Part shown: positions 24,795-61,419 of the stretch, piece by piece
Layout: each line of letters starts with the position of its first letter
Position numbering within the stretch: the first letter of the stretch is position 1
Source of the DNA: Rebecca billardiae RCC1528
Lineage: Eukaryota; Protista; Haptophyta
Assembly: GCA_965240325.2 (NCBI GenBank)
Contig: OZ251226.1
Location: 3,286,001-3,350,000, forward strand
Direction: 5' to 3'
Length of the DNA: 64,000 nucleotides
Notes under the pieces: generated by a model
What the model saw: only the letters and a program-made list of their open reading frames with translations
Databases searched by the model: none
Told to the model about the DNA's origin: nothing
Position numbers and translations under genes: made by a program

Positions 24795-26590
24795 TCAGCA
24801 CACCAGCAGCATCAGGTCAGTGAGCCCGTCGCCCTGCGAGCTGAAGCAGAAGAGGCCGGACACCTCGTGCCCGCCCGCGACGCCGGTGATCTTGGCGCGG
24901 CACAGCGGGCACGTCGAGTCGCGCGCGAAGCGCTGCCGCCGGTCGCGCTCGACCCACGTCGCGAGGCACGCCTTGCAGAAGACGTGGCCGCACGCGGGCA
25001 GCACGACGGGCGCGCTCAGCGCGTCGTGGCAGATCGAGCACTGCGCCTCCGAGCCGCCCAGCTCAGCCAGCTCCTCGGGGGAGGCGTCGCGCCAGGGCTG
25101 GCGCGCGGGGCACGCGCGGCGGGGCGCGGGGGCGCGCGCGCGAGCGAGCGCGTGAGTGTAAGCGGCCGCGGTCGCGCTCGCGGTCGCGCTCGCGCGCGCG
25201 CTCGGCCTCGCGCGCCCGGTCTGGCGCTCACCGGCTCGTGTGTGCGCGCGCCGTCCAGCAGCGCCTGCTGCCGCCAGCGGCGCAGCGCGTGCAGCTGCTC
25301 GAGTGCGGAGAGCAGCTTGAAGGCGCAGTACGTGAGGAGCAGCCACACGGACCAGAAGCCGCCGCCGATCATCGCGCTCGCGTCCTGCGCCGCCACGCCC
25401 TCCGCGCCGCGCGCCGCGGCCGCGACTCGCACGAGCCCCGCGCCGAACCAGCCGAGCCACAGCAGCACGGGCAGGGCGGTGCGCGCCAGCCCGACGCACA
25501 GCTCCCAGCCGTGGCAGAGCTGGCGCGTGCGCGAGGGGGCGGGCTCGGCGCGCAGCGCGGCGAGCGCCACGCCCGCGAGCTTCACGCACGCCGCGACGCA
25601 GCGCGTCGCCAGGTCGAGCGTGAGCACGCGCACGCCCACGCGCTGCGCGGGCGGCGCGTGGGCCCCAAACGGGTTGAGGACTGAGACAGGGTCGAGCGGC
25701 GGCGTGTGCAGGGGCATGGCGTCGGCGGCGGAGGCGAGGAGCAGCGCGAGCGGCGCGTGGGCGAGCACGAGCACGAGCGCGCACGCCGCGCGCGCGCGCG
25801 CGCGCCGCCCCGTCTCCTCGAGCGGCGCGCGCTGCAGCCGGTTGGCCGCGTGCAGCGCGGCGCTGAGCCACACGCACGCGCCGCACGCGGCCCACGGCAT
25901 CGCGAGCGCGACCGACATGGCGAAGAGGAGGACCCAGCCGGCGAGCGCGAGGGCGTACGCGTAGAGGAACAGGCCGAACTGCAGCCCCTCGTTCCCGCCG
26001 GTGCACAGCATGCACAGCACGTACAGCACGAAGAAGAGCACGAAGTGCTCCTTGGACGAGTACGCGACCGCGCCGACCGGCACGACCAGCAGCGCAAACA
26101 GCACGGTGAAGCACAGCTTCTGCAGCTCGGAGTACTCGGCGAGCGGGTGGCGCGGGCCGGACGGGTCGTCCGGCTCGGGGGCGCCGTCCGCGCCGCCGCC
26201 GGACGCCGCCGGCGCCTCAGCGTCGGCCTCGCTCGCGCGCGGCGCGCCGACCGCCTCGCCCTCGGCCGCGGCCGGCGCAGCGGCCGGCGCCGACGCACCC
26301 TCCGCGCCGGCCGAGGCGGAGGGCACGGCGGGCGCGGCGGCGGCGGCGGGTGCGGGCGGGGAGGAGCCCACTGCCGCTACAGGCGCCGTCGCGGCGGGCG
26401 CGCCATCGCCACTCTCCGCCGATGACGGCGAGGGAGGAGCGGGCGGCGGCGGCGCCGCCGGCTCGGCCGCCGAGTCCTCCGCGCTCGCGCCGGCGTTGGC
26501 GGCGATCTCGGCGCGCACATCTGCGAGGTTGGGCGCGTCGGTCGACTGCGCCGCGAGCAGCTGCTGGCTCTCCTCCACGGGCGGCGGCAT
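24795..26590 (-). CDS. Multi-TM RING E3 ligase, RNFT1/2-like; intron 25098-25231
   Basis: Several TM helices, then CSICHDALSAPVVLPACGHVFCKACLATW...TCPLCR and a terminal GDGLT. Confidence 0.8.
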
Positions 26591-26693
26591 GGGCGCGCCC
26601 CTTGCGAGCGCCCACCCCGCAACTTTTTGGACGCTGGCTATAAAGAGGGCCAGCGGGCCCACCGCCACCGCCTGCTGCTCAGCTTGCCTCAGC

Positions 26694-27802
26694 CAAGGGA
26701 GTCAAGGGTGCCCGCGCCCCAGTGGCGCGCTCGGCGGATGTTGGGATACACCTTTTTGCCCGCGGCCCTGCGGCGGCGGCGGCGGTGGCGTGCTCCGCTG
26801 GCGGGGCGAGCGCACGGGGCACGGCGCTGCGGGCGCGGATGTGCCCGCGAAGCCGGCGCGTGCGGACGGGCTGTTGCGGGAGAGTATCAGGCGCCCTCCT
26901 GCGACGCGCGACTTGCGCCACGCCTCTTTCGCCTCGGCTCAGAGCAGCGCGCACGCACGCGCCGCCTCAAGGCCAGCCTTGCCGCGCCGCAGCCGACCGC
27001 GCGCGCGCCGTGCGCGGCGTGGTCGGGAAGGAACGGGCGCTGCTGCCGGGCGAGATGGCGACATCATGGGCGCACGCCATGCCGCCCCGCGGCGCCGCGA
27101 AAGAGCACGAGAACGGATCCGCACAGCTGTTGACGAGTGCTGATTTCTTGCCGTGCCTGAAGCCAGACCTGAGCTCGAAGAAGATGATGAAAGAGCATCA
27201 GCGCGAGGAAAGCGTCGCACCCAGCACTTCTACATGACCACGCGGTGATGAACATTCATGTAAGAGTAGCCCGCGTGCCCGTCTGGCACTGTTCTGTGTC
27301 TCAATGATCGTCCCGACAACGGTCACGACCGCGAGGCAGTGCACACCATTTGTGACAAGTCGAAAAGGCGTGCAAACGGACCGACGACACTCTCGTCAAG
27401 GCGTGGCGGGGCGGCATGGCGTGCGCCTATGATGTCGCCATCTCGCCCGGCAGCAGCGCCCGTTCCTTCCCGACCACGCCGCGCACGGCGCGCGCGCGGT
27501 CGGCTGCGGCGCGGCAAGGCTGGCCTTGAGGCGGCGCGTGCGTGCGCGCTGCTCTGAGCCGAGGCGAAAGAGGCGTGGCGCAAGTCGCGCGTCGCAGGAG
27601 GGCGCCAGATGCTCTCCCGCAACAGCCCGTCCGCACGCGCCGGCTTCGCGGGCACATCCGCGCCCGCAGCGCCGTGCCCCGTGCGCTCGCCCCGCCAGCG
27701 GAGCACGCCACCGCCGCCGCCGCCGCAGGGCCGCGGGCAAAAAGGTGTATCCCAACATCCGCCGAGCGCGCCACTGGGGCGCGGGCACCCTTGACTCCCT
27801 TG
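26694..27802. mobile_element. Non-autonomous fold-back DNA transposon (P-superfamily-like MITE), subfamily A
   Basis: ~395-bp TIRs starting CAAGGGAGTCAAGGG; 7-bp TSD CCTCAGC at 26687 and 27803. Confidence 0.9.
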
Positions 27803-27809
27803 CCTCAGC

Positions 27810-28916
27810 CAAGGGAGGTCCGGGCCGGGAGCTCCCAGCGAGCGGCCAGCGCGACATCACCTCAAGGTTTTTTCCTGAGCGCCGGGCGGCAGCGGCGGCG
27901 AGGGCGGTGCTCCGCTGGCGGGGCGCGCACGGGGCACGGCGCTGCGGGCGCGGATGTGTCCGCAGAGCCGGCGCGTGCGGACGGGCTGTTGCGGGAGAGC
28001 ATCTGGCGCCCTCCTGCGCCGCGCGCATTGCGCCACGCCTCTTTCGCCTTGACTCAGGGCAGCGCGCACATGCGCGCTGCGTCAAGGCCAGCCTTGCCGC
28101 GCCGCAGCCGACCGCACGCGCGCCGTGCGCGGCGTGGTCGGGAAGGAACGGGCGCGGCTGCCGGGCGAGATGGCGACATCACGTGCGCACGCCATGTCGT
28201 CCCGCGGCGCCGCGAAAGGGCGCGATAACGGATCCGCACAGCTGTTGACGAGTGCTGATTTCTTGCCGTGCCTGAAGCCAGACCTGAGCTCGAAAAAGAT
28301 GATGAAAGTGCATCAGCGCGAGGAAAGCGTCGCACCCAGCACTTCTACATGGCCACGTGGTGATGGACATTCATGTAAGAGTAGTCCGCGTGCCCGTCTG
28401 GCACTGTTCTGTGTCTCAATGATCGTCCCGACAAGGGTCGCGACCGCGAGGCCGTGCAGACCATTTGAGACAACTCGAAGAGGCGTGCAAACGGACCGGC
28501 GACACGCTCGTCAAGGCGTGGCGGGGCGGCATGGCGTGCGCACGTGATGTCGCCATCTCGCCCGGCAGCCACGCCCGTTCCTTCCCGACCACGCCGCGCA
28601 CGGCGCGCGCGCGGTCGGCTGCGGCGCGGCAAGGCTGGCCTTGACGCAGCGCGCATGTGCGCGCTGCCCTGAGTCAAGGCGAAAGAGGCGTGGCGCAATG
28701 CGCGCGGCGCAGGAGGGCGCCAGATGCTCTCCCGCAACAGCCCGTCCGCACGCGCCGGCTCTGCGGACACATCCGCGCCCGCAGCGCCGTGCCCCGTGCG
28801 CGCCCCGCCAGCGGAGCACCGCCCTCGCCGCCGCTGCCGCCCGGCGCTCAGGAAAAAACCTTGAGGTGATGTCGCGCTGGCCGCTCGCTGGGAGCTCCCG
28901 GCCCGGACCTCCCTTG
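27810..28916. mobile_element. Non-autonomous fold-back DNA transposon (P-like MITE), subfamily B
   Basis: TIRs starting CAAGGGAGGTCCGGG; TSD CCTCAGC at 27803 and 28917; central ~315 bp homologous to the neighbouring element. Confidence 0.9.
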
Positions 28917-29170
28917 CCTCAGCAAGCTTGAGATGATCGGATTCGGACCCCTGCACTCCTGCTCCCGGGTTGACGCAACACAAAGACGCGGGCACACAGC
29001 CAATAAATCGAGGAGGTCGAGGCCGGGTATCCTGCACACTATTCATCATCACCTCGTCGTCGCTTCCAAGCTGAAAGCTGGATGAGAAATCTCGTCAAAT
29101 CTCGCCGCCGCCATTTTCTGCCGATTATTTTACGCGGCCCGCGATTCGCTTCGGCCGTCGAAGGCCGGAC

Positions 29171-31636
29171 GATGACGACGGGAGGCGCAACGCGCATGGC
29201 CGCGTTGGTCGCGTGCGTCGTGCTGCTGCCGCGGGCGGGGCTCGGGATCGAGCGCATGGCGCCTCTTCACCGGCGCACCGCTTTCAACCCCGCGCTCGGC
29301 CGGCCGAGTGCGGCGCCGAGCGGCGCGTGCGGCCGGCCGCGGCCGCACGCGCCGCACGCGCTAGGCTCCAAGAAGAAGGGCAAGCGCAAGTTCCGCGGCG
29401 GCATGGACTGGGACGACGCGCGGCTGTACGACGAGTGGATCAAAGCCGGCGCGCCCGACGAGTTCGACTTCCGCGACATCGACGAGATCGACCTCGACGC
29501 GCCGCCCGACACGCCGAGCCAGCTCGCGCTCGCGGACGAGGCGCAGGAGGACGAGCTGGCGGCGCAGCTGCGCAGGCGGGGCGCGGGGTCGGGGGTGGAC
29601 GCGCGGGGGCAGCAGGCGGGGCCGGGGCCACCGCCTGGCGCCGGCTGGGAGGCCGCCGTGCCCGGCGGCGGCGGCACGCCCGTCAGGCGGAGCGCGGAGC
29701 CACCCGCGCGCGCTGCGAGCGGCGCCGAGGCGTCAGAGCTCGCGATCGCGCAGGCGCTGGCGAGCACGCGCGCGGCCGCGAGCGCCGATGCCGCCGCCGC
29801 CGCCGCCGCCCCCGCCGCCGGTGCCATCCCTCCCGAGGTCGAGGCCGAGCTGCTGCGCGCGGCCGCGCCACCGGGCGGCGCGCGCGCGGGCGGTGCCGCT
29901 GAGCCCGCGGCCGGTGCCGAGGCCGAGCCGACGGAGGCGCTGCGCATGCCCGGGTGGGAGCGCGTCGGGCAGCACGCGTGGGCGCGGGCGGAGGCGCGCG
30001 AGCCCCGGCCGCCCGCACCGCCGCCCGCCTTCTCCGTCCCCGTGCCGCCCTCCCTCCGCCAGCACATCCTCGCGCGCGAGGCGGGCGGCGTGGAGCCGCA
30101 GCCGCTGTGGCCGCAGACGCACTGGCGAGCGTGCTGGGTGAGCGCGACGGACGCGGTGCAGGCGCGCTGCCTGCGCGCGACGTGGGCGAACTTCAACGTC
30201 AAGATCGCCGCCAACTTTGACGACCTGCCCGCGCTCGCCTCCGACAGCTACGGCGGCGAGGGCGTCGGCGGCGCGGCGGGCGGCGCGGCCGAAGCGGCGG
30301 CGGCCGCGCCCGGCGCCGCCGAGCCAAGCCTCGCAGAGGAAGCGCTGCTGCGCGCGGAGATGGCGCACGTGGCGACGGGGCTGCCCGCGCTGGCGGACGC
30401 GACCTCGGTCGAGCTGCTTCCCAACCCGGACGCGCGCACGAACAAGCAGTATGTCTTCCGCGGCGAGGTGCGAGCGGGCGGCGCGTGCCCGCGGCCGTGC
30501 GCGGCGCGGCTGTGTGCGGCGCGGCGCGGCTGTGCTGTGCGCTGCTCTGAGCTGAACCCCCCTGGCTGCGCGCGCGCGCGCGCGTATGGCGCAGGTGGAT
30601 GGGCGCGTGGACGACCTGATCCTCAAGCTACGCCCGCTCTCCGCGCCCAACCGCGCCGCCCTCTTCCACTCCGCCGTCGCCTTCAGCAACGGCACCCACC
30701 GCGTGCTCGCTGACGGCATGTGCGCGGCCGCGCTCACGGTCGCCAACTCGACGATGGCGACGATCTCGCGCACGGGCGCGTACGACGCGATGCTGGAGAA
30801 GCTGGCGGAGGAGTTTGGGCTACCGTTCACCGGGCCGAACGTCGAGTCGGGCGGCACGGGCGAGGTCGTCCTCCCCTCCGAGCGCCGCCCGGCGGGCAAG
30901 GAGCTGCCTGGCGCGCGCATGCTGCGCGAGCGCGTGCTCCGAGACGGCAAGGTTCTGGACTCCGGCATGCTCAAGGTGTCCTCCTTCCTCAACCACCAGG
31001 TGCGCGCGGGCGCAGGGGGGCACGCGCGCGGCGCGGCGCGGCGCCCTCGCGCGCTCCCCCGCACGAGCGCCCCCTCCGCCCCCTCCGCCCCCTTTCGCCC
31101 CCCCGCAGGTGGACGTGGGGCTGATCGAGGCGTGCGGGGAGGAGCTGGCGGTGCGGCTGGAGCGCACGATGCCCTCCAAGATCCTCACCGTCGAGGCGAC
31201 CGGGCTGATCCCCGCGATCTTCGTCGGGCGGCACCTCGGCGTGCCCGTCGTGTTCGCGCGCAAGTCCCGGCCGATGACCATCTCCGACGCGTACTCCGTC
31301 TCGTACCGCTCGGCGACCAAGGGCACCATCCAGGAGCTGGTCGTGTCGGAGGAGTACCTGGCCGCCTCGGACCGCGTGCTGCTCATCGACGACTTCCTCG
31401 CGGGCGGCTCGACGGCGGAGGCGCTCTTCAAGCTGATCAAGATGGCGAACGCCAAGGTGGTCGGCGTGGGCGTGCTGATCGAGAAGCTCACCGCCTCGGG
31501 CCGCGCCTTCCTCTCCGGGTACGAGGTGCAGATGGAGTCGCTCGTCAAGGTGGCGATGCTCGAGGGCGGGCGCATCGACGTGCTCGACGAGCCGCCCTTC
31601 ATCGTGCCGCCCTCGCGCGACGACGCGCCCAGCTGA
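29171..31636 (+). CDS. xpt: Xanthine phosphoribosyltransferase with a long N-terminal extension (signal/transit-like leader, degenerate Ham1-like domain); introns 30468-30594 and 31000-31108
   Basis: LKVSSFLNHQVD, KILTVEATG, PVVFARK, RVLLIDDFLAGG, VGVLIEK are Bacillus-type Xpt motifs once spliced. Confidence 0.85.
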
Positions 31637-32335: not shown

Positions 32336-34873
32336 TCAATTTGGCGACGATGATAAAGCCGAAGGAAGACGACGCGCATCAGCTCGGACGTCGTCGGAGG
32401 AAGACGCCGACGAGTCAGCGTTGGGCCGCGCAAAGCCGAATAAGCCGAAGCCACCGGGCGGGCGCGGGAGGGGTGGAGGTGTCTCCATCGCCGCCATCGG
32501 CGTGCATGGCTGAGCCGTCGCTGCCTGCTTCGAGCTCTGCGCCACCCCGGCCTCGACGGACGGCGGCGAGCCAAAGACAAACAGTCGAGGGCGGGCCTCG
32601 GCGGCGGCGGGAGCACTCGCGGCCAGCGGCGCGGTGGCGGAGGTCGATGACGCCGGCGGCGGCGAGCCAAACACGAAGACGCGCGCGCTGCCCGCCGTCT
32701 CGGAGGGCGAGGGACCAGACGGCGGTGCGGCCGAGGAGCTCGCCGGCGGAGTCGCGACTTGTGGCGGCTCGAACACGAACGGCGGCGGAGCGTCAGCCTG
32801 CGGCGGGATGGGAATGCCGAGCTTGCGCATGCCGTCGAGCACGCACGGGTGGCACCAGCCGTCATCGGCTGCTGCACCACACTCGCGGCAGCGCCTCATG
32901 CCAGCGCGGGAGGCGCACTTGGGGCAGCGCATGCCTCCGTCGATGCCCTCGCAAAGGCCGTCCTCCACCTCCTCGCCGCAATCCTCGCACACGGGGTCCG
33001 AGTCCGAGGGCGTCGGCTTGGGGCGGCCCACCGTAGGCCGGAGGTGCGGAGGGCGCGGCCGGTGGAGTGCCGCGCGCGCGCGCGCAAAGCGCACCATTGG
33101 GTCGTTGTGGAAGGCGGCGCCTTGCGTGCGCTCCCACCAGTCGCGCACGCGCGCGATCGCGTCAATGTCGTCTTCGCTGGGCGCCCGCTCCCACCACGGC
33201 TCGTCGATGCGCCGGTCGGGCAGCTGCCTGGAGACGAGTTCACGACCCGGACCGCCCGGCAGCCAGCGCATCGAGAGCTCGCCGCTGCCGATCAGCGCGC
33301 CGTCCAGGCCGCGCAGCTCTAGCCGCGCGCCGTTCTGCAGCAGGTAGAAGAGGAAGGAGCCGCGCCGGTACCAGCCCTCGATGATGTGCCCGAGGCGGCC
33401 GTACTGGCCTCTCGGCTTCGCATGCATCGCGTGCCAGCCGAGCTCAGCGCACAGGTCCTCCAGCATCATGATGCGGACCTCAGTAGCCCGACCGTATGAG
33501 AGCGCGCCCCTCAGCTCGAGCGACACTCGGATCTCGCACCAGCCACGGAGGCGGTCATTGTTGACGAGGTCGTTGACGAACAATACTGCGCACCCCTTGT
33601 TGCGGTAAACATGCCGAGCGGTCAAGACCACGCCGCGCTCGTCGACGTACTCCCCCTCGAGGAGCAGCGGGAACGCGCCTCGGCCGAGGGGCGGCTGCTG
33701 CGCACTGCGAGCGCCGTCTGCGGGCCTCGCGCCGTTGCATGCGCCGCAGCGCGGAGCTGCGAGATCGTTGAGCAGCGTGCACGCCGGGCACGCCCACGTG
33801 CCCCCCGCCTGCTCCCGCCCGCACGCCGCCTCGCCGAGCGCCGGCACCTCGACCGCCGCCTGCTCGGCCAGCAGCGTGCCGCTCCAGCGCGGCCACGCGC
33901 CCACGTCCGCGCGGAACCAGCCGCACTTTGGGCAGCCGTTGTCCACGGTGGCCGCGCCGTGGCGCTCGCCGTGGTGGCGGGCGAGGTCGTCGCACGCGAA
34001 GTGGTCGATCGGCCCGAAGCCGCAGCCGCCGCACTGCCGCGCGTTCGGCATCTGCTGCCGCAGCTGCCGCGCCAGCAGCTGGTTGGCGACGCGCGCGCGC
34101 TGCCCCGCCTGCACGGCGGCGCGCATCGCGAGCGCGTGCTCGTGGAGGGCCTGCTGCGCGTCGGCGTACACCTCGTCGTCGCGCACGCGCGCGCGCGCGC
34201 GCAGGTACTGCGCGAAGAGCGCCTCGTCCCCGTCGCAGTGCCGCGCGACCGTGAGGTCGTCGAAGGGCTCCGAGACGCAGCCGCACGCGCGCTGCGCGTC
34301 GGCCGGCTCGGACAGCTCGCCGCCCAGCACCTCGTCGAGCTCGGCGAAGAGGGCGGACGGCTCGTACGCGCGCCCGGCCGTCGGGCGGCGTCCCCACCGC
34401 GCGAGGTCGAGAGTGAACGGGCAGAGCACGCGCCCGCCGCGCGCGGCGAGCTGCTCGAAGGGCATCTCGTCCGAGCTCACGCGCCGCACCTCGCGCGCAA
34501 AGCACGTGGTGCACAGCAGGTGGCGCGCGACCGAGCTCTTGCACTGGACGCCGCAAGCCGTCGGCTCGGGCACCTCCTCCGCGCACAGATCGCAGATGGG
34601 CGGGGTCGGGGCGTCGCCGACTGCGCTGCCCTCGTCAGCGCGTGCGAGCACGCGACGCGCGCGGTCGACAGCGGTCGAATCGGCCACTGCAGCGAGCTCC
34701 TCGACGGCGGCGCGCAGGAGCTCCTGGCACATCGGCGTGTCTGGCTGTGCACGCCTGACGCCATCTGCGAGCGCAGTGAGCACGAGCGTCGCCGCGTGTG
34801 CCGGCGAGACGAGCTCGCCAAGGGAGATACAGCCATCTCCCTTGAGCTCGCCGACGTCGTCGTCGCGCAGCAT
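32336..34873 (-). CDS. RBR-like RING/Rcat + RanBP2-type (NZF) zinc-finger protein with further Cys clusters and an FVFG-repeat tail
   Basis: CDLC..C..HLLCTTC..CP; QCGGCGFGPIDHFACDDL..H..CPKC; WACPACTLLN..RCGAC; FVFEPP, FVFGSPP x2, FGLFGF. Confidence 0.75.
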   Translation of the reverse strand: MLRDDDVGELKGDGCISLGELVSPAHAATLVLTALADGVRRAQPDTPMCQELLRAAVEELAAVADSTAVDRARRVLARADEGSAVGDAPTPPICDLCAEEVPEPTACGVQCKSSVARHLLCTTCFAREVRRVSSDEMPFEQLAARGGRVLCPFTLDLARWGRRPTAGRAYEPSALFAELDEVLGGELSEPADAQRACGCVSEPFDDLTVARHCDGDEALFAQYLRARARVRDDEVYADAQQALHEHALAMRAAVQAGQRARVANQLLARQLRQQMPNARQCGGCGFGPIDHFACDDLARHHGERHGAATVDNGCPKCGWFRADVGAWPRWSGTLLAEQAAVEVPALGEAACGREQAGGTWACPACTLLNDLAAPRCGACNGARPADGARSAQQPPLGRGAFPLLLEGEYVDERGVVLTARHVYRNKGCAVLFVNDLVNNDRLRGWCEIRVSLELRGALSYGRATEVRIMMLEDLCAELGWHAMHAKPRGQYGRLGHIIEGWYRRGSFLFYLLQNGARLELRGLDGALIGSGELSMRWLPGGPGRELVSRQLPDRRIDEPWWERAPSEDDIDAIARVRDWWERTQGAAFHNDPMVRFARARAALHRPRPPHLRPTVGRPKPTPSDSDPVCEDCGEEVEDGLCEGIDGGMRCPKCASRAGMRRCRECGAAADDGWCHPCVLDGMRKLGIPIPPQADAPPPFVFEPPQVATPPASSSAAPPSGPSPSETAGSARVFVFGSPPPASSTSATAPLAASAPAAAEARPRLFVFGSPPSVEAGVAQSSKQAATAQPCTPMAAMETPPPLPRPPGGFGLFGFARPNADSSASSSDDVRADARRLPSALSSSPN

Positions 34874-35065
34874 GTTCAATTTGGCGCGCAGTCGACCTTG
34901 ACGGGTGAGCAAGCGCAGTGCTGAACGGTGCTGAACAACGGTTCCGCGGCAAACCGGCGATCCAGATGACCAGAATGATCTGGAGCGGTTCAAACAAGGG
35001 AGGTCCGGGCCGGGAGCTCCCAGCGAGCGGCCAGCGCGACATCACTCCGAACTTTTCCCTGAGCG

Positions 35066-37313
35066 CCCTACTCGGGCCGGGGGTTTGGCGGTAGCGAAGT
35101 TTGTCACTTTGACAGAATGTTTCAGCTTCGTCAGCGTGCGCTATTTTGAGCGCGCGCCTATGAAGGCAGCTGCTATTCAAAGGCGAGTCGCCTATGAAGC
35201 CGGCTCCTATGTGCGAATACCTTACAGGTACTTGGGAGCTGGCGCTCATAGGGCTTCACCGGCCGCGAGGCTGCGCCATGCCGCCCATCTGCACGTCGCC
35301 GAATCGGCCGCAAATCGGATGCGAGAGGCGAGGCGGAGGACGGCAGACATTCGCCATGAGCGTGGTGTCGATCCTTGTTGCGTGCGCCACCGTCGTGCTT
35401 GCTCCCGCCGCCGGGAAGCAGGCGCGCAAGCTGCCGTCCACGCAGGAGGACAATTCCTATCGTTCAAAGCATGCGCCGAGCTCTCAATCCAAGTACATGG
35501 CGGTTGGGCGACCCTCTCGCCGTTCGTGGACGCTGCCATACCGTACTGCGCGAACTCTTGCTGCTACCTGCTCCGCCCAGCTGGCACGAAGGTGGGGCGC
35601 GAGGCGTTCTACTGGCAGACGTCTGGCAGTAGACACCCTGACCTCGCAGCTGATGCTTCCCTCAGTGTGCTGTCCCAGTTGACAGACATGTCGTGGCTTG
35701 CGTCTCGGGGGCAGGTATTCATCTACCGTAGCGCTTCGCCGAGCTACGCCCTGCGCAAGCCGCCTCAGTGAGCGCCGCTCTGAAAGCCTCACCGACCTCT
35801 GCGTTCTATCGCGTGCCGTCTCACGCGTGATGCGGTTGAGCTGCCGTTGCACGCGGCGTGTGGCTCGAGCTCGCGCGGGGCTTGGCGACGCACACGTACG
35901 TGCGGAAAGCCGCATTGCTCTCGGCCTACGCCGCGCGCGTCCGCGCGATGGGCGCGGGCACGCTCACCGGTCAGCGCGCGCATGAGCTGCGCGCACTGAT
36001 CGCCGGTGAGCTCAGAGCTGCGCGCGCTGCCGGCAGTCATCCCTGCGAGTGCTGCGGGGCGAAGCGGCGGGCGAGGCGCCAGCAGGAAAGCTCGCAATCT
36101 TCGACTCAGCGTTCGTCATGCTGCCCCCGCTGCCACCTGACGCGATTGGCCTGCAGCTGAGGGCGCCAAGGCGACGCTGCGCCCGCTCCTAGGGGCAACC
36201 GGCGGCTGAGGACGAGTCGAGCGATGCAGTTTGACTATGAGCTGACCGTTGACGATGATGCTACGCGTACTACTACGACTGATGACGATTTTGACGCGCT
36301 GCTGGTCTCGGCGGTCATCAGCTGAGCCTGCGAGTGAGACTTGTTTCTCTCAATGCTGCCATCCGCCGCCGGATATGTGACTACATGTGAGCCCACGATT
36401 ATCACTTGAGCTCGGCGCCAGTCCCGATCGAAAGCAGCCTGAGCCTGAGGCCCCGGGCCCGGACGGGCAGACAGTCTGACAAGCTGCAGACGACTCGACG
36501 ATCAGCTGCAGAAAGATGATCACGGCGACATGATGATGATGGGCGCAGTCGCGGAAGGCCCACCTGCCACGGCCTACTTCAGGATGCGCAAAGGGGTGGT
36601 CAACATTAGATATCTGCTAAGGTGACAGGAGCTGTAGCCGCGGGCCGCAGCAGCGACGCGCAGCGCGCATGCATGCACACGCGCCTGACAGATGCTCCGG
36701 GCACGAATGATTGCCCTCAGCTCGACCCAGACGAGTTGAAGCATGGCAGAGTGGCGCCGTGCACACGTTCACATCGATGGCCTTGCGACCATACAGTCTT
36801 GCCTTGTACGCCCGCGAGGTCAAACCACAGCTGTGGCTTTGGATCAGGTCCGCCGAGCACCACCGCGGTACAGGCCCAAGCCTTGGCAGTGCGAGCAGTC
36901 CTCTTGAGTTCGGCGATCTGGAAAGCCTGCATCACCTGGCCCACAGCGCGCAGCATCGCGAAGCTGTGGGCCAGATTGATCCCCGCGCGAACAAGACCAA
37001 GAGCAATGCTCGCTACGTGTGAGCAGGTGCTGATTCTCCTACTGTACGGCACCCGCTCGGGAACTTGTGCCCCGGTCTCGACATCCGGGTATCGCCCGGA
37101 TCATGGGCCGGGGCATTGGCCGCCGCGCCGCCCGTCCCATCAACGCAACAATCGCAGCTGCGGCCTGCTGCACCTCCGGTCCCGCGTCCTCCCCCGGCGC
37201 GGCCATCACGTTGTGCGGCATGGGGATCGCGTCCGCAGTCCCGCGATTTTCCGAAAAACCGGCGGCCGATTTTTCGGAAAATCCTTACCACCAAACCCCC
37301 GGCCCGAGTAGGG
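35066..37313. mobile_element. Nested non-autonomous CMC/EnSpm-like element with captured gene fragments
   Basis: 28-bp TIR CCCTACTCGGGCCGGGGGTTTGG(C/T)GGTA; flanked by CG on both sides (possible 2-bp TSD); splits the left arm of the host MITE. Confidence 0.75.
35357..36160 (+). pseudogene. Frameshifted gene fragment with a signal-peptide-like start (cargo of the nested element)
   Basis: MSVVSILVACATVVLAPAAG, followed by protein-like segments in shifting frames; no family recognised. Confidence 0.4.
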
Positions 37314-38483
37314 CGGCGGCGGCGGCGAGGGCGAGTGCTCCCCTGGCGGGGCGCGCACGGGGCACGGCGCAGCGGGCGCGGATGTGCCCGCAGAGCCGGC
37401 GCGTGCGGACGGGCTGTTGCGGGAGAGCATCTGGCGACCTCCTGCGCCGCGCGTCTTGCGCCACGCCTCTTTCGCCTCGGCTCGGGGCAGCGCGCACGTG
37501 CGCGCCGCCTCAAGGCCAGCCTTGCCGCGCCGCAGCCGGCCGCACGCGCGCCGTGCGCGGCGCGGTCGGGAAGGAACGGGCGCTGCTGCCGGGCGAGATG
37601 GCGACACCATACGCGCACGCCATGCCGCCCCGCCACGCCTTGACGACCGTGTCGTCGGTCCGTTTGCATGCCTCTTTGACTTGTCACAAATGGCGTGCAC
37701 GGCCTCGCGGTCGTGACCCTTGTCGGGACGATCATTGAGACGCAGAACAGTGCCAGACGGGCGCGCGGGCTACTCCAGTGCGTGGATGTTCATCACTGCG
37801 TGGTCATGTAGAAGTGCGGAATGCGACGCTTTCCTCTCGCTGGTGCTCTTTCATCATCTTCTTCGAGCTCAGGTCTGGCTTGGCACTGATTCAAGCGATC
37901 AGCACTCGTCAACAGCTGTGCAGATCTATTGCCGTGCCCTGTCGCGGCATCGCGGGGCGGCATGGCGTGCGCGTATGGTGTCGCCATCTCGCCCGGCAGC
38001 AGCGCCCGTTCCTTCCCGACCGCGCCGCGCACGGCGCGCGCGCGGCCGGCTGCGGCGCGGCAAGGCTGGCCTTGAGGCGGCGCGCACGTGCGCGCTGCCC
38101 CGAGCCGAGGCGAAAGAGGCGTGGCGCAAGACGCGCGGCGCAGGAGGTCGCCAGATGCTCTCCCGCAACAGCCCGTCCGCACGCGCCGGCTCTGCGGGCA
38201 CATCCGCGCCCGCTGCGCCGTGCCCCGTGCGCGCCCCGCCAGCGGAGCACTCGCCCTCGCCGCCGCCGCCGCCGCCCGGCGCTCAGGGAAAACTTCGGAG
38301 TGATGTCGCGCTGGCCGCTCGCTGGGAGCTCCCGGCCCGGACCTCCCTTGGTTCAAAGTTCAAACATCAACGCGACCGGACTGTCATTGCCGACTCAGAC
38401 TGTCATTGCCGGACTGCCTGTGCCTCGGCGGCCAGCACCACGCCCGGCCGGCGCGCGGCTTGTTCGAGCGACGCGGCGTCATC

Positions 38484-61093: not shown

Positions 61094-61184
61094 AGAGTAC
61101 AGTACAATATTTATTATTGAGTAATACAACAGCGGCGCCGCCCTTGGTTCAAGCAAGCAAGGGCCGTAAGCAATAAGGTCATTT

Positions 61185-61218
61185 GGTTCAACAAGGGGAG
61201 GACTCCCCTTGGGTTCAA
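61185..61218. mobile_element. 20-bp P-like mini-element or excision footprint between 7-bp direct repeats
   Basis: GGTTCAA-CAAGGGGAG-GA-CTCCCCTTG-GGTTCAA. Confidence 0.6.
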
Positions 61219-61419
61219 GGGGAGTCCGCTCACGCCCTGCGCGTCGTGCTTCCAGCGCGACCGCGATGAGCCAATAACTGCCGCGCGCCCTCACTCACGG
61301 AGTGTCCGAGTGACACGCCACACGGCCGGGCCCCACGCGCAGGCTCACACGTGAGTACTCATCGTATCAGAGCTGAGAGCAGCAACGCCCGGTCAGCGTA
61401 TATAACTATATGAGCCGAC

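Follow-up and report, generated by a model that had tools for sequence, protein, structure and literature searches.

Introduction

How do two different transposable elements come to share a single target-site duplication? The question arises at a short divergent promoter of a GC-rich alga, where a preliminary description of the sequence had placed two fold-back elements in series at one 7-bp target. The window analysed here is the whole stretch of 64,000 nucleotides at C8:3286001-3350000 in a eukaryotic genome of 72 Mb, 41 contigs and ~70% G+C. Three superfamilies of cut-and-paste elements are relevant. In transposases of the P superfamily, which are encoded between the ends of the element, a GTP-binding domain splits the RNase H fold and a THAP domain usually lies at the N terminus; the elements have CANRG termini and target duplications of 7-8 bp. 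hAT elements duplicate 8 bp and excise via hairpins on the flanks, so that no element bases are left behind. Transib/RAG1-like elements duplicate 5 bp, carry CACWGTG-type ends and combine blunt element ends with flank hairpins.

Structure of the locus

Direct reading of positions 26400-29200 gave the order CCTCAGC, element A, CCTCAGC, element B, CCTCAGC (Table 1), which agrees with the preliminary description in all three 7-mers and both elements. Its claim that a second subfamily sits exactly in the duplication of the first was also borne out: the three 7-mers are perfect, and A and B belong to different subfamilies. Both elements start with CAAGGGAG and end with CTCCCTTG. Each consists of inverted arms of ~403 bp, 98% complementary to one another, around a loop of 303 nt, and the two loops have the same orientation, that is, the elements stand head to tail. 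A and B match at 84-98% identity over the inner ~900 bp and at 56-70% over the outer ~100 bp of each end; unlike the rest of this outer part, the first 8 bases are common to both. The window contains two occurrences of the 15-mer composed of the duplication and the element start, compared with 0.12 expected. Open reading frames of A and B were scanned against Pfam, and no coding capacity was found in either.

Table 1. Coordinates of the tandem and its flanking genes in the window
Feature	Position	Strand	Evidence
Flanking gene, left	25019..26590	-	GC3 periodicity and GC1>GC2; without Pfam domain
Target-site duplication, copy 1 (CCTCAGC)	26687..26693	.	7/7 match to the consensus S-Y-Y-S-R-R-S
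Element A, non-coding fold-back transposon, 1109 bp	26694..27802	+	at least 43 near-identical genome copies; no Pfam match in ORFs
Element A, parts	arms 26694-27096 and 27400-27802, loop 27097-27399		
Target-site duplication, copy 2, common to A and B	27803..27809	.	sequence reading
Element B, non-coding fold-back transposon, second subfamily, 1107 bp	27810..28916	+	no Pfam match
Element B, parts	arms 27810-28211 and 28515-28916, loop 28212-28514		
Target-site duplication, copy 3 (CCTCAGC)	28917..28923	.	sequence reading
Flanking gene, right	29082..30713	+	GC3 periodicity; without Pfam domain

The tandem lies between two divergently transcribed genes, 97 bp from the start codon of the left gene to the left duplication and 159 bp from that of the right gene to the right duplication. 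The intergenic region minus A and B is ~261 bp, and together the elements stretch this 261-bp two-way promoter to 2.5 kb. Full-length matches of the B type number at least 31 in the genome at ~89-100% identity, ~25 of them at 99% or higher, and for both A and B several dispersed copies are 100% identical to the window elements. A junction of A- and B-type 8-base tips at 7-bp spacing occurs once genome-wide, at copy 2 of the duplication. With no second such junction in the genome, movement of A-7 bp-B as a composite unit was rejected. A search of the assembly with the left flank, for a second haplotype of the locus, returned the self match only, and a metagenome scan for the empty site of the locus gave no match.

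The CAAGGG family and its target duplications

The genome-wide search with the terminal inverted repeats and the tabulation of duplications, both proposed in the preliminary description, returned many near-identical copies and perfect 7-bp duplications of varied sequence in all 50 readable distinct insertions (60 fetched loci and the window). The termini are CAAGG...CCTTG. In at least seven subfamilies, the common CAAGGG tip leads into a short conserved motif, counted at 324 places on one strand and 326 on the other, compared with 0 and 3 in the control (A type excluded). An additional family with the CAAGGG tip contributes ~60 ends, mostly of 240-290-bp elements, and the total is ~430 elements in 72 Mb. 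A and B are fold-back, non-autonomous representatives of a single cut-and-paste family that is marked by CAAGGG tips and duplicates 7 bp of target. It is an abundant, young family, numbering more than 400 elements and ~340 excision remnants.

Several copies have composite structures of other kinds. Two mosaics, L053:335-2636 (C19:1634205-1636506) and C1:945401-946589, carry ~50 bases of one subfamily's tips around the complete element of another, and in both the inner element is without matching flanking repeats. Such mosaics may be a route by which termini are exchanged between subfamilies, as A and B seem to show. At L019:417-2609 (C35:398653-400845), an A copy truncated by 25 bases at its end adjoins a complete one, with one outer duplication, GTCCGGG, for the pair; this tandem is different in kind and probably a repair product. 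Identical A copies with identical flanks recur every 19-25 kb at C10:802207-847770 and at an interval of 5.8 kb at C12:2843180-2850082. These recurrences are segmental duplications carrying A, not new insertions.

The window itself contains a B-like element at 34995-38350 (window positions 34988-38364) with the duplication GTTCAAA. It holds a foreign insert of 2.25 kb (~35066-37313) with its own 30-bp inverted ends, and its right duplication is directly abutted by an extra GTTCAAA (38358-38364). This extra copy may have been left by a tandem partner that has since departed, or it may be a repeat that was already present.

Target preference

The symmetrised target logo, S-Y-Y-S-R-R-S, shows selection against C at -3 and for A at -6, and amounts to ~3 bits. 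Perfect consensus 7-mers make up 14 of the 50 duplications (28%), compared with 1.9% of background 7-mers. The insertions are also directed with respect to genes: with strand called from GC3 periodicity and GC1>GC2, of 53 flanks that could be called, 46 had the 5' end of the gene pointing toward the element.

Single words appear to be favoured well beyond the consensus. Among ~46 loci, CCTCAGC served as the target at three and GTCCGGG likewise at three, a recurrence that we estimate at 100-270 times their genomic frequency. This result suggests that single words are much hotter than the logo indicates.

The empty site of the locus had been described as quasi-palindromic. This is real at the locus, where a perfect stem of 7 bp would close a 4-nt loop, a value reached by ~1.3% of random window sites, and the axis of the palindrome is displaced by half a base from the middle of the duplication. 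It is no general feature of the targets: at the 45 other insertion sites the stem never exceeded 4 bp. A palindromic target as a general rule was rejected, the 7-bp stem being unique among the 46 sites.

Re-use of the duplication

Junctions, defined as an end-hexamer, a spacer and a start-hexamer, were counted genome-wide by pattern match and compared with a control pattern. With spacers of 0-30 bases there were 126 places, compared with 11 in the control. The preliminary description had set the frequency of tandems relative to chance as the observation on which re-use of the duplication would stand or fall; at a spacer of exactly 7, we found 24 places on many contigs, compared with 0 in the control. 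There were no junctions at spacers of 5, 6 and 8, and three unique loci altogether at 4, 9 and 10. The number of 7-bp junctions expected under uniform insertion of ~430 elements in 72 Mb is well under 0.01, and the excess over this expectation is, by a rough count, ~1000-fold or greater. The duplication is re-used far above chance.

Nine of the 24 junctions were inspected for their partners and outer flanks, the later ones by pattern matches alone. Two of the nine are clean three-copy tandems of complete elements: the locus described here and one in L006, 44 kb downstream, which reads GTCCGGG, A, GTCCGGG, a 1077-bp element of a third subfamily, GTCCGGG. In two others (L053; C5:3318759) the 7-mer is found on the far side of one partner only, and in three on neither far side. 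One has a 12-bp remnant as a partner, and one, the partly inspected junction at C25:796298, has a full-length A-like copy on one side. With the far-side 7-mer missing, or a remnant as the partner, some of the junctions must have other or later histories. Scored by eye, the 7-mer fits the consensus perfectly in 9 of the 24 junctions.

The preliminary description had also proposed that precise re-use implies strong targeting that builds spaced arrays. The targeting is seen in the enrichment of consensus 7-mers and in the orientation of the flanking genes. The arrays are not: the 24 junctions include none of three or more intact elements, and no pair of them lies ~1.1 kb apart.

The partners in both clean cases belong to different subfamilies, and two insertions are therefore needed. 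This excludes slippage, rolling-circle copying or unequal exchange that duplicates one element. A related possibility is a product of repair, in which an excision break is repaired from two templates, or unequal exchange operates, without a second transposition. Mosaic copies such as those at L053 and C1:945401-946589 exist in this genome, and comparable chimeras are found in Galileo (PMC3573991). However, A and B are complete, each with its own tips, and match dispersed copies at 99-100% identity; none of the three 7-mers carries a mismatch, and the outer ~100 bp of the two elements offer little homology for template switching. We consider this origin very unlikely for the locus. Least probable of all is an assembly artefact, in which the assembler would have concatenated an A-bearing and a B-bearing allele of one site. 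It would still need two independent insertions at the same 7 bases, and a similar three-copy tandem exists 44 kb away, along with the same-spacing junctions on many contigs.

The size of the excess calls for a closer look at what brings the second element in. One rival explanation is homing, in which transposase bound to the resident ends, or a four-way junction formed where a 400-bp hairpin extrudes, draws newcomers and sets the register of the cut. The sharpness of the peak at 7 bp, with nothing at 5, 6 and 8, would be explained in this way, as would an excess of three orders of magnitude or more with ~430 elements, and new insertions are also found beside or inside remnants and other elements. 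On the other hand, homing is unneeded if single 7-mers are preferred to the degree that the triple recurrence of CCTCAGC and GTCCGGG suggests, and the element's own end sets a disfavoured C at -6 of the regenerated site. We regard homing as unlikely. A rough count suggests that the ~3-bit preference and the restriction to promoters explain only part of the excess; its magnitude would be reached only with very hot single sites, as the recurrence of these words leads us to infer, and resident elements may add some attraction.

Excision remnants

A start-hexamer followed within 0-30 bases by an end-hexamer occurs at 359 places, compared with 19 in the control. Among 41 remnants of 12 bp seen with their flanks, 20 stand between perfect 7-bp direct repeats and three more between repeats with one mismatch. 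Remnants retain 6-22 bases of each tip, and their joints lie at short self-complementary words. The CAAGGGGCTTAC family has left 14 remnants of 36-45 bp with 16-22 bases retained per end, and a 15-bp remnant is present in L062.

Within the window, a 26-bp remnant at 34819-34844 (window positions 34812-34851) consists of both tips of another subfamily between perfect AGCTCGC repeats. It shares a promoter with the B-like element, at a distance of ~150 bp, which suggests that one promoter has been used repeatedly. A 20-bp remnant at 61192-61211 lies between perfect GGTTCAA repeats. Around it, element tips and remnants are clustered at 61141-61228, where GTTCAA occurs three times, and a cluster is also present at the start of contig C9. 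The region 61141-61228 may be a decayed multi-element site, although its parse is ambiguous.

In P elements, the donor cut has a 17-nt stagger that leaves bases of the element ends at the donor site (PMC7776569). The remnants described here are compatible with such a long staggered cut; aborted gap repair or mobile micro-elements could mimic them. Flank-hairpin chemistry of the hAT or Transib type does not fit, as the remnants keep both element tips.

Superfamily and transposase search

On the basis of CANRG ends and 7-8-bp duplications, the elements had been described as fitting the P superfamily. The CAAGG...CCTTG termini and the duplication length (7 bp in 50/50) agree with both marks of that superfamily. 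Membership is a different matter. The suggested search for a THAP/P transposase gave a single match in the genome, to PF21787 (P/THAP9-type RNase H) at C21:1533970-1534365, with a weak score of 32 bits, in an open frame of 1322 aa without stops. The models PF21788, PF21789, PF12017 and PF05485 (GTP-binding, C-terminal, P-element and THAP, respectively) had no match in the genome.

We found one long CAAGGG-ended element, C33:836557-844022, of 7466 bp. By pattern, it has identical CAAGGGGCTTAC tips and the 7-bp repeat CTCTGAG (C33:836550-844029), and it is the only long copy in a family otherwise made up of ~270-bp elements and the 36-45-bp remnants. This element is a candidate autonomous element. 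The RNase H frame on C21 was rejected as a part of this 7.47-kb family because no family end lies near C21:1.53 Mb. A metagenome scan for the tip of the long element gave no match.

The hAT superfamily was rejected, since the duplication is always 7 bp and remnants keep their tips. Transib/RAG1-like membership does not suit the CAAGGG family either, with its 7-bp duplication, its CAAGGG ends and the tips retained in remnants. Membership of the A/B family in the P superfamily is unproven because the transposase match is unlinked to these ends; termini, length of the duplication and behaviour are consistent with it. We give a rather low probability to the case that the family behaves like P and is moved by a transposase of another type, or alternatively that resident hairpins draw insertions to the flanking 7 bases.

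Discussion

The tandem is probably a double insertion at one preferred promoter 7-mer, brought about by re-use of the site. The first element would have entered a strongly preferred CCTCAGC in the short divergent promoter and duplicated the 7-mer. Because a duplicated top-ranking 7-mer in an open promoter is still a top-ranking target, each copy of CCTCAGC would have stayed a preferred site in the same open promoter. A later element of the other subfamily would then have integrated with staggered cuts exactly on those 7 bases, giving the third copy. In this scheme, we infer that site preference alone could suffice, and the cutting chemistry is presumably P-like.

The closest precedent is the P element of Drosophila melanogaster, which forms tandem dimers by double insertion with the 8-bp duplication in the junction (McGurk and Barbash, 2018; PMC5932611). 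These dimers match the target consensus better than single insertions do, are clustered at hot spots at transcription starts, and were explained by re-use of the duplicated, still-preferred target (PMC5932611). As in P dimers, one target duplication stands between A and B, the junction matches the target consensus, strong sites lie near gene or transcription starts, and the arrangement is head to tail, as in most P dimers. At the locus the spacer has the length of the duplication, is identical to both outer repeats, and occupies a consensus site near a gene start; identity of the spacer with both outer repeats was also seen in L006 and not in five other inspected junctions. Unlike in P dimers, the spacer measures 7 bp, not 8, the two partners come from separate subfamilies of non-autonomous fold-back elements, and the host is an alga with a GC-rich genome.

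The P element itself has an 8-bp duplication, 31-bp terminal inverted repeats and a transposase with THAP and GTP-binding domains (PMC7776569). In common with it, the algal family favours promoters, has a GC-rich target motif that is weakly palindromic, hops locally across tens of kb and leaves tip bases behind on excision (PMC7776569). Unlike in the P element, THAP and GTP-binding domains were not detected in the genome, the one RNase H match being unlinked. A second system to compare is Galileo of Drosophila, which belongs to the P superfamily and has a fold-back structure (PMC3573991). Like Galileo, the family has 7-bp duplications, terminal inverted repeats of hundreds of bases, abundant 'two-TIR' copies without transposase, a division into several subfamilies, and chimeras whose core derives from one subfamily and whose tips derive from another. 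Unlike Galileo, its tips and sequences are unrelated and its organism is very distant, and no Galileo/P transposase was found linked to the CAAGGG ends. Multimers and self-insertions of Tourist and Stowaway MITEs in grasses were reportedly described by Jiang and Wessler in 2001. Those non-autonomous elements likewise re-enter a short target beside or inside residents, but their target is a fixed TA or TAA, so that re-use is trivial, whereas the 7-bp target of the A/B family is degenerate.

We conclude that the locus is a clean new example of the double insertion already known for P elements, not a new mechanism. The novelty lies in the counts of duplication re-use, the promoter bias and the census of remnants. 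Evidence for double insertion takes its cleanest form here: because the partners can be told apart, the tandem must derive from two separate insertions. Tandem dimers have been proposed as the seeds of satellite arrays. If the transposase proves to have a fold other than P, the family would be much more interesting. The findings extend P-element behaviour, namely promoter hot spots, dimers and excision sites that retain tips, to a very distant GC-rich alga, and the family would be a practical system for transposase discovery and promoter tagging in this alga.
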